Shown here in pieces: positions 565-30,450 of a stretch of DNA of 64,000 nt. The stretch is from sequence record PQ898602.1. The stretch is one strand, 5' to 3'. A program made the position numbers and the translations under genes. Under the pieces are notes generated by a model, which saw only the letters and a program-made list of their open reading frames with translations, was not told where the DNA came from and did no database searches. Each line of letters begins with the position of its first letter. Position 1 is the stretch's first letter.

Positions 565-593
565 TTGACTATATATTATATGTGGTCTATAAT
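565..593 (+). promoter_or_regulatory. Sigma70-type promoter
   Basis: TTGACT (565-570), 17-nt spacer, TATAAT (588-593); predicted start near 600. Confidence 0.85.
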
Positions 594-601
594 AGACCTG
601 T

Positions 602-835
602 CGTTCATCCTCATGTTAGCACTTCTGCTGGCATTCACCCTTGCCCATCATAATGACGCCAATCCTTACGATTGGCATATGTCCTGTGAAAGGTGGTTAC
701 AGAGATCTACGGAAATCCGATTGGATCCTAACCTTGACCTAAGGTCGAAGTTGAGTCTAATCGCTTACCTTAAATCAAAAGTACCAGGTGAATGTAACGG
801 AGCGTATACATAGGACGCAAGTAAGTCGCGGAACG
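602..835 (+). ncRNA. Glutamine-riboswitch-like aptamer, copy 1, with an ORF inside the P2 loop
   Basis: CGTTCATCCT (602-611) and AGGACGCAAGTAAGTCGCGGAACG (812-835); P1 CGTTC/GAACG, P2 TCCT/AGGA; resembles the glnA/Downstream-peptide core. Confidence 0.65.
613..813 (+). CDS. Small two-Cys protein nested in aptamer 1 (66 aa)
   Basis: ATG at 613 is in frame with track ORF 565-813; the upstream TTG start lies inside the promoter; hydrophobic N-terminus; paralog of 849-1016. Confidence 0.7.
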   Translation: MLALLLAFTLAHHNDANPYDWHMSCERWLQRSTEIRLDPNLDLRSKLSLIAYLKSKVPGECNGAYT

Positions 836-838
836 GAG

Positions 839-1076
839 CGTTCATCCCATGTTAGAACTACTTTTCTATTCTAGTATGGCATGTGCTGATGCAGATGCTC
901 TAATGTTTAGAATCAAGGCACAAAAACATCTTGAACCTAAAATTCAAGTTGAACTAGTGGAGACCATTAAGGACTCTGTGCCAGAATGTAGGTACTACTG
1001 GGACGCAAACGACTGAAGGAACGGGGAAACGGATCCAGCGAAAGCTGAGAAGGTTCAATTTCACCAACTTCAGGAG
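839..1076 (+). ncRNA. Glutamine-riboswitch-like aptamer, copy 2 (Downstream-peptide/Gln-II-like), with nested ORF and pairing to the downstream RBS region
   Basis: CGTTCATCCCA (839-849) and TGGGACGCAAACGACTGAAGGAACG (999-1023); CTGAAG (1013-1018) is complementary to CTTCAG (1068-1073), which overlaps AGGAG (1072-1076). Confidence 0.7.
849..1016 (+). CDS. Small two-Cys protein nested in aptamer 2 (55 aa)
   Basis: Hand translation MLELLFYSSMACADADALMFRIKAQKHLEPKIQVELVETIKDSVPECRYYWDAND; below the track length cutoff; aligns with 613-813. Confidence 0.7.
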   Translation: MLELLFYSSMACADADALMFRIKAQKHLEPKIQVELVETIKDSVPECRYYWDAND

Positions 1077-1084
1077 TAAGACAA

Positions 1085-1249
1085 ATGAACACACTCAATC
1101 TAATCAAGAAGCAAATCGAGAAGGCATCTGCACTTCACGATGCACAGATCGCTAACACTGCATATCGTGGTGTTAAGTATGATTGCAAGCAAGGCGCTGA
1201 GGAAATCCATGGCACCTTCTGCTATCGTGGTCGCACCTACGTTAAGTGA
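1085..1249 (+). CDS. DUF4278-like small protein (54 aa)
   Basis: AGGAG RBS; two YRG motifs (TAYRGVKY, FCYRGRTY). Confidence 0.8.
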   Translation: MNTLNLIKKQIEKASALHDAQIANTAYRGVKYDCKQGAEEIHGTFCYRGRTYVK

Positions 1250-1254
1250 TCGCC

Positions 1255-1350
1255 ATGGAAGCACTTCAAGTAGCAACATTAGGTTCTATTTTTAGTATTG
1301 CTTTTATCGGTCTTCTTTACGTAGAGATTTCCCTCTTACATAAGGGGTGA
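1255..1350 (+). CDS. Single-TM microprotein (31 aa)
   Basis: MEALQVATLGSIFSIAFIGLLYVEISLLHKG; tightly packed between neighbours. Confidence 0.55.
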   Translation: MEALQVATLGSIFSIAFIGLLYVEISLLHKG

Positions 1351-1353
1351 AAC

Positions 1354-1518
1354 ATGCTGAAGATCAGAATTGAATATGATCTTCCAGAATACGATCCAGA
1401 TAAACACGATCCAGATGAAACTTTTGCGTTTTTAACGTATCGTGGTGTGAATTACGCCAAGTGGGTTAATCTTAAGTCACGAGGTAATCCATTCTGGAAA
1501 ATATTTAAGAGAGGGTAA
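1354..1518 (+). CDS. Second DUF4278-like small protein (54 aa)
   Basis: Contains LTYRGVNY. Confidence 0.65.
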   Translation: MLKIRIEYDLPEYDPDKHDPDETFAFLTYRGVNYAKWVNLKSRGNPFWKIFKRG

Positions 1519-1536
1519 ACAACCCTCTCTTTTTTT
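1507..1536 (+). terminator. Intrinsic terminator
   Basis: AGAGAGGGT/ACCCTCTCT stem followed by a T-run. Confidence 0.8.
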
Positions 1537-29632: not shown

Positions 29633-29780
29633 ATTATCCAAAGATGTAGATTATCCCAGTGATAAACTGGGTAAGTACATTTGGAATCTAGAAGAAAGTA
29701 ATAATCATGTTACTGGATTTTGTGATTCCATTGGAGAATGTTTTGAAGAAATCATCAGACATGGGAGTGTGGCGGAATAG
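29613..29780 (+). CDS. Small hypothetical protein (55 aa) overlapping tRNA-Leu
   Basis: Hand translation MMKIQIELSKDVDYPSD...; stop codon lies within the first 18 nt of the tRNA. Confidence 0.45.
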   Translation: MMKIQIELSKDVDYPSDKLGKYIWNLEESNNHVTGFCDSIGECFEEIIRHGSVAE

Positions 29781-29847
29781 GTAGACGCACCAGACTTAAA
29801 ATCTGTTGGGCATTATGCCCGTGAGAGTTCAAGTCTCTCTACTCCTA
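29763..29847 (+). tRNA. tRNA-Leu(TAA)
   Basis: Acceptor GGGAGTG/TACTCCT, anticodon loop CTTAAAA, long variable arm GGGC-ATTAT-GCCC, T-loop GTTCAAG; CCA not encoded. Confidence 0.95.
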
Positions 29848-30377: not shown

Positions 30378-30450
30378 GCCAATTTAGCTCAGCTGGTAGA
30401 GCAGGGCTTTTGTAAAGCTCAGGTCGTCGGTTCAAGTCCGTCAATTGGCT
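30378..30450 (+). tRNA. tRNA-Thr(TGT)
   Basis: Acceptor GCCAATT/AATTGGC, D-arm AGCTCAGCTGGTAGAGC, anticodon TGT, T-loop GTTCAAG; CCA not encoded. Confidence 0.95.

Follow-up and report, generated by a model that had tools for sequence, protein, structure and literature searches.

The stretch of DNA analysed here, hereafter the window, comprises 64,000 nucleotides (nt) of record PQ898602.1 from Synechococcus phage S-SCSM2R, which it matches at 100% identity over identical coordinates. One small operon spans its positions 565–1531. Within this operon, two CGTTCA 5′ arms and two GGACGCAA-N10-GAACGG 3′ arms exactly bracket two small open reading frames (ORFs), ORF1 (613–813) and ORF2 (849–1016). 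An earlier note on this DNA had read the arms as halves of two tandem glutamine-riboswitch aptamers, each enclosing a whole protein-coding gene. We consider it probable that the region 602–1024 instead forms one composite glutamine aptamer, with ORF1 in the loop of paired region P2 and a second, ORF2-bearing unit lying within P3. The parts of the element are as follows; every coordinate given previously proved correct against the sequence.

602–611, plus strand: 5′ arm 1, CGTTCATCCT
602–606, plus strand: 5′ strand of P1, unit 1; CGTTC, invariant in 67 of 67 unique sequences
608–616, plus strand: 5′ strand of P2; TCCT 608–611, bulged C612 and the extension ATGT 613–616, which includes the ORF1 start codon
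613–813, plus strand: ORF1; 66 amino acids (aa), phrog_6471, a two-cysteine small protein filling the P2 loop
808–815, plus strand: 3′ strand of P2; ACAT 808–811 and AGGA 812–815, including the ORF1 stop codon TAG 811–813
816–830, plus strand: 15-nt junction of 3′ arm 1, CGCAAGTAAGTCGCG, followed by GAACG 831–835
816–823, plus strand: junction J2/3, CGCAAGTA; the conserved CGC of the ligand pocket and AGUA (820–823), one half of the E-loop; invariant in the alignment
824–828, plus strand: 5′ strand of P3; AGTCG, partner 1010–1014
831–843, plus strand: inner GAACG(G) 831–836, linker AG and inner CGTTC 839–843; a local 5-bp hairpin in the glutamine-I-like reading, present in the minimum free energy (MFE) structure with a base-pair probability of 0.72
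839–849, plus strand: 5′ arm 2, CGTTCATCCCA
845–849, plus strand: 5′ strand of P2′; TCCCA; its final A849 also begins the ORF2 start codon
849–1016, plus strand: ORF2; 55 aa, phrog_504, filling the P2′ loop; paralogue of ORF1
999–1009, plus strand: 3′ strand of P2′ and junction; TGGGA 999–1003, CGCAAA 1004–1009
1004–1018, plus strand: 15-nt junction of 3′ arm 2, CGCAAACGACTGAAG, followed by GAACG 1019–1023
1010–1014, plus strand: 3′ strand of P3; CGACT
1015–1024, plus strand: second half of the E-loop (J3/1), distal 3′ strand of P1 and capping G; GAAG then GAACGG, with the ORF2 stop codon TGA at 1014–1016

A GAG linker separates 3′ arm 1 from 5′ arm 2. The sequence CGTTCATCC occurs twice in the window, at 602 and 839 only, where 0.29 occurrences would be expected. 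GACGCAA-N10-GAACG likewise occurs twice, at 814 and 1002 only (0.11 expected; two or more in 0 of 100 shuffles). As had been claimed, the start codons of both ORFs lie in the 5′ strands (613 and 849) and the stop codons in the 3′ arms (811–813 and 1014–1016). The ViennaRNA MFE structure contains both proposed pairings, ATGT 613–616 with ACAT 808–811 and A849 with T999.

The locus is common to hundreds of cyanomyoviruses, and in related cyanophages either unit may have a 4-nt hairpin loop at the same locus instead of an ORF. Unit 1 of phage S-SM1 reads CGTTCATCCC-TTCG-GGGACGCAAGTAAGTCGCGGAACG in place of ORF1, followed by GAG and a unit 2 bearing ORF2. S-SM1, which has no ORF1, and Syn9, which has it, share the same flanking genes, nrdB and talC. 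The Rfam glutamine models were evaluated on such natural compact orthologues from related phages. The compact unit of S-SM1 matches both RF01739 (28.9 bits, E = 0.0047) and RF01704 (25.5 bits, E = 0.0048), and some compact units exceed the RF01704 gathering score (35.7 and 34.0 against 33). These matches bear out the assignment of the arms to glutamine-riboswitch aptamers.

A scan of IMG/VR with the 3′ pattern gave at least 120 loci, and all locus counts from here on rest on the matches listed. P2 of unit 1 (junction GTAAGTCGCG) measures up to 30 nt in 60 cases, 31–47 nt in 9 and 199–234 nt in 22. For unit 2 (junction ACGACTGAAG), 11 cases are compact and 77 are 140–208 nt long, while one of 389 nt is probably due to a mis-paired arm. 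Among 84 unique loci, the layout of the two units is hairpin/ORF in 57, ORF/ORF in 17, hairpin/hairpin in 9 and ORF/hairpin in 1; 75 of the 84 are thus ORF-bearing. The central 40-nt block (812–851) is found once per genome in 425 phage records, all of them cyanophages, where its annotation, if any, is hypothetical protein and never RNA. Searched against bacterial genome contigs, the 14-base 3′ pattern gave at least 120 matches in unrelated bacteria, none of those listed having a CGTTCA arm, a result with no bearing on cyanobacteria.

The loops of both P2-type stems hold whole protein-coding genes, as the earlier note had proposed. Exactly one ORF makes up the loop content in 22 of 22 long unit-1 loops and in 73 of 78 long unit-2 loops (95 of 100 overall). 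Pairwise ratios of non-synonymous to synonymous substitution (dN/dS) range from 0.18 to 0.30, at about 0.2 for ORF1 and 0.2–0.3 for ORF2, with a surplus of third-position changes, and the remaining two reading frames contain 4–5 stop codons. The nested ORFs encode real proteins under purifying selection. In 93 of 95 ORFs the ATG is placed 10–11 nt downstream of the start of CGTTCA, within the stem or directly next to it (the few outliers are at 9, 16 and 21 nt), and the mRNA leader of ORF1 is the ~12-nt 5′ strand of P1 and P2. Unit-1 ORFs usually stop within the 3′ strand of P2 or a few nt to either side, including at the TAA in GCAAGTAAG. As a TGA or TAA within CT(G/A)AAGG terminates 70 of 73 unit-2 ORFs, the aptamer core supplies the last codons of these proteins, DAND (DANG in one); in the window, it encodes the C-terminal WDAND of ORF2 and the stop codon. 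The Shine-Dalgarno sequence of ORF2, GGAG 835–838, is likewise part of the core, sharing bases with the proximal GAACGG. Of the 84 unique loci, the 74 with ORF2 have GGAG in 70 cases, and the 10 that lack ORF2 never have it (Fisher p = 3.6e-10).

The ORF1 and ORF2 families are paralogous over their Cys-to-Cys core (hhalign probability 94%, E = 1.2e-7). The names of the 137 homologues of ORF2 are limited to ‘hypothetical protein’ or the phage record, PHROGs lists phrog_6471 and phrog_504 as unknown function, and Pfam returned nothing significant for the nested proteins. AlphaFold models ORF2 as a small bundle of helices (predicted local distance difference test score, pLDDT, of 85), for which a Foldseek search against the PDB gave no match better than E = 2.8.

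Conservation of the arms in related phages, which the earlier note had anticipated, is found across cyanomyoviruses and is accompanied by covarying stems. In an alignment of 67 unique composites with replaced loops (A1), pairing holds in 97.9% of cells, and both sides have changed in 10 pairs. The covariation score is 0.169, compared with 0.060 in shuffles (0 of 500 reach the score) and 0.015–0.040 in slid controls. Covariation was seen in 5 of 5 aligned pairs of P2 (608–611 with 812–815) and in 4 of 5 pairs of P2′. A check of P1 and P2 covariation in orthologous loci had been suggested; it comes out positive for P2 and P2′ but not for P1, all strands of which (both CGUUC and both GAACG) are invariant in 67 of 67 sequences.

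The stems that span an ORF show the same signature. ORF-spanning unit-1 P2 stems have 5.67 contiguous pairs, as opposed to 3.87 when arms are swapped between loci (0 of 2000 permutations reach 5.67), and position 3 of ORF-bearing P2 stems is C-G in 12 cases, T-A in 9 and mismatched in none. The ViennaRNA MFE structure of 600–1090 includes P2, P2′, the ATG-containing extensions, the inner hairpin and a downstream helix that masks a Shine-Dalgarno sequence (the anti-Shine-Dalgarno helix). Across the 84 loci, the predicted probability of closure over 150–220 nt is usually 0.7–0.95. Its median is 0.82 with the native ORF interior versus 0.28 with dinucleotide-shuffled interiors (Wilcoxon p = 1e-7).

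Several observations join the two units into one structure. Neither unit 1 nor unit 2 occurs alone in any of ~97 loci, apparent singles having a second unit with the variant CGCA(A/C)A. P3, formed between the junctions of the two units, reads AGTCG/CGACT in 88 of 97 loci, AGTCA/TGACT in 5 and contains a G-U wobble in 4, with no mismatches; it is thus 100% paired, and five loci carry a double change from G-C to A-U. Four hairpin/hairpin loci exceed the RF01739 gathering score (43.6, 40.3, 40.2 and 38.4 bits against 35). Three of these alignments run from unit 1 (CGUUCA, P2 and CGCAAGUA) through a P3 of AGU/ACU formed across the units to GAAGGAACG in unit 2, and the fourth match covers the same span. 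A single unit 1 or unit 2 falls below this score, whereas the spanning alignment exceeds it. In its conserved core, the element follows the glutamine-I (glnA) three-way junction, with a CGUUC/GAACG helix, A, P2, CGCAAGUA, P3 and GAAG. AGUA 820–823 of unit 1 and GAAG 1015–1018 of unit 2 flank P3 and match both conserved junction strands of the Rfam glutamine-I consensus. As the units always occur together, share a covarying P3 and are spanned by RF01739, the sequence argues for one composite aptamer at 602–1024. The two independent tandem aptamers of the earlier note are not supported: the covarying P3 is shared, the E-loop is split between the units, and the units are not found apart in ~97 loci.

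In the canonical reading of the composite, P1 would form between 602–606 and 1019–1023, and P3 would enclose the inner hairpin (831–835/839–843) and P2′. P3 would then carry a second, permuted aptamer-like junction made up of the GAACG-GAG-CGUUC hairpin and P2′, with ORF2 in the P2′ loop. This arrangement shares with Glutamine-I (glnA RNA, RF01739) the three-way junction with its E-loop (CGUUC/GAACG P1, A, P2, CG(G/C)AAGUA, P3, GAAG). P1, the capping G and the unpaired A before P2 are located at 602–607/1019–1024, with a second set at 839–844/831–836. J2/3 CGGAAGUA and J3/1 GAAG surround P3 in both, the phage J2/3 having one C-for-G change, and the compact phage orthologues exceed the curated score. 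Unlike Glutamine-I, the phage element holds a 66-aa gene in its P2 loop, which thus measures 200 nt instead of about 4, and a second aptamer-like junction with a 55-aa gene in P3, its J2/3 reads CGCA as in class II, and the window gives no covariance-model match.

With Glutamine-II (the Downstream-peptide motif, RF01704), the phage element shares CGUUCA, a hairpin, CGCA and GGAACGG, as well as the same gene association. Neither the two CGUUC strands nor the two GAACG strands differ from each other, and the 5′ CGUUC could therefore pair with either the distal or the proximal GAACG. In the latter case, pairing of 602–606 with 831–835 would produce a glutamine-II-like pseudoknot in unit 1, the class II pseudoknot being formed with the GGAACGG (830–836) that lies inside the P3 loop. 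RF01704 scores range from 22.7 to 35.7 bits, with a gathering score of 33, and the P1 strands are invariant. The phage RNA differs from class II in that its enclosing helix spans 180 nt of sequence containing the second unit and its gene, and in that the class II-type local mini-helix is not conserved between phage loci. Such a mini-helix (CGC 827–829 with GCG 838–840) was considered and rejected in favour of P3, as its register is lost in the AGTCA variants. P1 of glutamine-I is structurally equivalent to the pseudoknot of glutamine-II, the two creating one and the same binding site. An aptamer in two pieces retains glutamine binding, and the crystal contained strand-swapped dimers; the roles of the J2/3 pocket and E-loop bases are taken from the same work (PMC6698751). 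Both the equivalence and the two-piece binding make either pairing physically reasonable.

Some loci depart from the usual pair of units. One of them (L089, 6502–6553) has an extra third unit upstream of the pair. This unit forms a short P3-like hairpin of its own, AGCCGACTCGG, and reaches 35.1 bits against RF01739, which shows that some phages do have self-contained units. In Synechococcus phage Sf-CH5 (L245, PV340852.1, 570–1165), a 573-nt homing endonuclease gene lies in the linker between unit-1 GGAACGGAGCG and unit-2 CGTTCATCCCATG, and its composite therefore contains three ORFs. Another locus (L104) has a 60-nt linker resembling a deletion remnant of an insert of the Sf-CH5 type.

The remainder of the operon comprises the promoter, a putative expression platform and its downstream genes.

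565–593, plus strand: sigma-70-type promoter; TTGACT 565–570, 17-nt spacer, TATAAT 588–593, 11 of 12 consensus positions
1013–1018, plus strand: anti-Shine-Dalgarno segment CTGAAG; overlaps P3 and the E-loop
1025–1065, plus strand: optional structured linker with the GNRA hairpin CAGC-GAAA-GCTG at 1036–1047
1068–1073, plus strand: anti-Shine-Dalgarno partner CTTCAG; overlaps the ORF3 Shine-Dalgarno sequence AGGAG 1072–1076
1085–1249, plus strand: ORF3; 54 aa, YRG motifs, DUF4278/IF17-like
1246–1350, plus strand: unannotated hydrophobic ORF of 34 aa, beginning MIAMEALQVATLG
1354–1518, plus strand: ORF4; second DUF4278-like ORF, phrog_6192, one YRG motif, just upstream of the terminator
1507–1531, plus strand: intrinsic terminator, the end of the operon

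The promoter had been recognised previously as near-consensus, with which its 11 matching positions agree. Its distance to CGTTCA is identical in related loci, and transcription should start near 600, 2–3 nt upstream of the aptamer. The GenBank start of SSCSM2R_3, the coding sequence of ORF1, is ATG 580, within the promoter spacer; all homologues begin at the ATG equivalent to 613. The GNRA hairpin of the linker covaries between loci (CAGC/GCTG, CTGC/GCAG, CTCG/CGAG), and many relatives have a short A-rich linker instead of a structured one. The linker also includes GGTTCA, similar to the CGTTCA arm. The 34-aa ORF overlaps the stop codon of ORF3, and a similar MEALQ... sequence lies 3′ of the DUF4278 gene in Sf-FR1 and S-SM1. 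Elsewhere in the window there are two tRNA genes, at 29763–29847 and 30378–30450 (Rfam 53.8 and 64 bits), and a related viral contig (L017) carries a PhotoRC-II RNA at 1021–1116 (57.1 bits).

Against DUF4278, ORF3 itself scores 18.2 bits, below the cut-off. All eight proteins scanned (ORF3 and seven orthologues) match PF14105 (DUF4278), two of them above the cut-off. In cyanobacteria, both glutamine aptamer classes precede DUF4278/IF17-like genes as ON switches, in which a helix masking the ribosome-binding site is proposed to melt (PMC6212724). By analogy, the phage element upstream of ORF3 is expected to fit this scheme: like Glutamine-I, it precedes a DUF4278/IF17-like gene and has a Shine-Dalgarno-masking helix that uses the 3′ part of the core.

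This anti-Shine-Dalgarno helix has a base-pair probability above 0.99 in the window and is predicted in nearly all of the 84 loci. CTAAAG faces CTTTAG in 30 of 30 cases, while CTGAAG faces a C at the variable position in 33 and a U in 21, and the A-C mismatch never occurs (Fisher p = 2.7e-9). The stop codon of ORF2 alternates between TGA and TAA in step with this covariation. The MFE structure of 600–1090 also pairs GUUCAU 603–608 of the 5′ arm with AUGAAC 1085–1090 at the ORF3 start. We rejected this pairing: since the start of ORF3 differs at other loci, it is not kept there, and it probably arose from the point at which the folded fragment was cut off.

In the proposed mechanism, an early-type phage transcript would carry the aptamer at its 5′ end. 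Without glutamine, the anti-Shine-Dalgarno helix would mask ORF3. With glutamine, P3, the E-loop and P1 would form, sequester CUGAAG and free the Shine-Dalgarno sequence of ORF3, giving an ON switch as in cyanobacterial gifB. Because CTGAAG overlaps P3 and the E-loop, it would be unable to pair with 1068–1073 while the aptamer core is folded. Folding should repress both nested genes, because their start codons lie inside aptamer helices, as does the GGAG of ORF2. Ribosomes starting or ending on the nested genes would unfold the aptamer, and a ribosome finishing ORF2 at UGA 1014–1016 would open the anti-Shine-Dalgarno helix. Coupling of nested-ORF translation with aptamer folding, the regulatory idea of the earlier note, is plausible and finds indirect backing in the presence of GGAG only at loci with ORF2; the expression platform and the downstream target ORF3 had been overlooked. 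A joint reading, which we put forward tentatively, is a single domain in which glutamine may act as an OFF signal for the nested genes and an ON signal for the IF17-like gene, with translating ribosomes preventing or resetting folding. Within it, the composite may hold two glutamine sites sharing P3, one glutamine-I-like and one resembling a circularly permuted glutamine-II; if true, these would link both known classes.

Several points weigh against the composite aptamer and its proposed control of the nested genes. At the gathering threshold, an Rfam scan of the window returned two tRNAs only, and a scan of 540–1120 at E ≤ 10 only noise; no match was expected in the window because the loops are 150–200 nt long. 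The loci are the matches listed in the IMG/VR scan, a filter of at least three P2 pairs was applied ahead of the alignment, and the statistics ignore phylogeny. Variation in P3 is confined to 2 of its 5 pairs, and the five double changes possibly come from only 2–3 lineages. Covariation says nothing on which partner P1 takes, its strands being invariant. By nearest-neighbour energies, both aptamer folds lie 9–11 kcal/mol above the MFE (−143.8 kcal/mol), for which tertiary contacts and ligand binding must compensate. Finally, P2 and P2′ are predicted to be closed even without ligand, which makes the glutamine-dependence of nested-gene repression uncertain.

The same predicted closure would suit a working aptamer whose ORFs are mere passengers, terminal loops being the only safe place for small genes, so that the nested genes would be uncoupled from glutamine. 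Every insertion site is indeed a loop or linker, including that of the homing endonuclease gene of Sf-CH5, and loop content varies freely among relatives, from a 4-nt loop through hairpins of 17–47 nt to an ORF. Passengers would not, however, be expected to show the fixed 10–11-nt offset of the start codon in 93 of 95 ORFs, nor a stop codon fixed in the core that alternates between TGA and TAA with the anti-Shine-Dalgarno covariation. The Shine-Dalgarno sequence of ORF2 being part of the core, and ORF interiors promoting stem closure, also speak against this explanation, which we regard as possible but somewhat doubtful.

Less likely still are two independent minimal tandem aptamers, with P1 at 602–606/831–835 and 839–843/1019–1023, 15-nt junctions and no P3, each sensing glutamine. 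Each unit does have CGUUCA, P2, CGCA and GGAACGG, that is, the glutamine-contacting bases (PMC6698751), and single compact units reach E = 0.0015–0.04 against RF01739 and RF01704. Unit 1 would fold first in transcription, and the extra upstream unit of L089 stands alone with its own short P3. Against this, the units of the usual pair always co-occur, the inter-junction P3 covaries without a mismatch in 97 loci, and the E-loop halves AGUA and GAAG are divided between them; in sharing P3 and the E-loop, the phage units differ from the self-contained folds of tandem riboswitches. A lone unit 1 or 2 stays under the RF01739 gathering score that the spanning alignment passes, and the constrained energy slightly favours the nested over the tandem fold (−135.1 versus −132.9 kcal/mol). 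That gene insertion destroyed the riboswitch, leaving its arms as relics in coding or flanking sequence, would fit with the lack of an Rfam match in the window but is very improbable, given that the arms are equally conserved in ORF-bearing and compact loci, compensatory changes occur specifically in ORF-spanning stems, most of the 5′ arm does not code for protein, nor does much of the 3′ arm, and ORF-bearing layouts make up 75 of the 84 unique loci.

The composite aptamer invites comparison with other RNAs that contain genes. Like group I and group II introns with homing-endonuclease or maturase ORFs, it accommodates whole genes in terminal loops while the RNA core can still fold; unlike them, it is a putative metabolite sensor and not a ribozyme, and the start and stop codons of its ORFs lie within core helices. 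In leader-peptide attenuators and the coat/replicase interaction of MS2, an ORF is embedded in a regulatory fold, the position of the ribosome sets the helices, and upstream translation unmasks a downstream start. Those systems respond only to charged tRNA or ribosome transit, whereas the structure opened in the phage element is a putative small-molecule aptamer.

That T4-like cyanophages carry glutamine riboswitches has been described in outline (PMC9602691, PMC9964418), and a 2010 paper already mentions glnA RNAs in tandem (PMC2864571). A survey of phage riboswitches reported glutamine aptamers in only two cyanophage genomes (PMC5473149). Full-text literature searches returned no account of an ORF in a riboswitch aptamer or of a composite with a shared P3, although Ames & Breaker 2011 and Ren et al. 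2015 might hold remarks on large P2/P3 inserts. The layout of genes inside an aptamer is thus apparently undescribed.

Riboswitch aptamers are usually taken to be compact non-coding leaders, and searches assume as much; the present finding favours insert-tolerant covariance searches for further split riboswitches. If our interpretation is true, aptamer helices can close over 150–420 nt of translated sequence, and the ribosome would be a second input to a metabolite switch. Cyanophages would then directly read the nitrogen status of their host, and thereby control a putative homologue of a glutamine-synthetase inhibitor together with a family of two-cysteine proteins.

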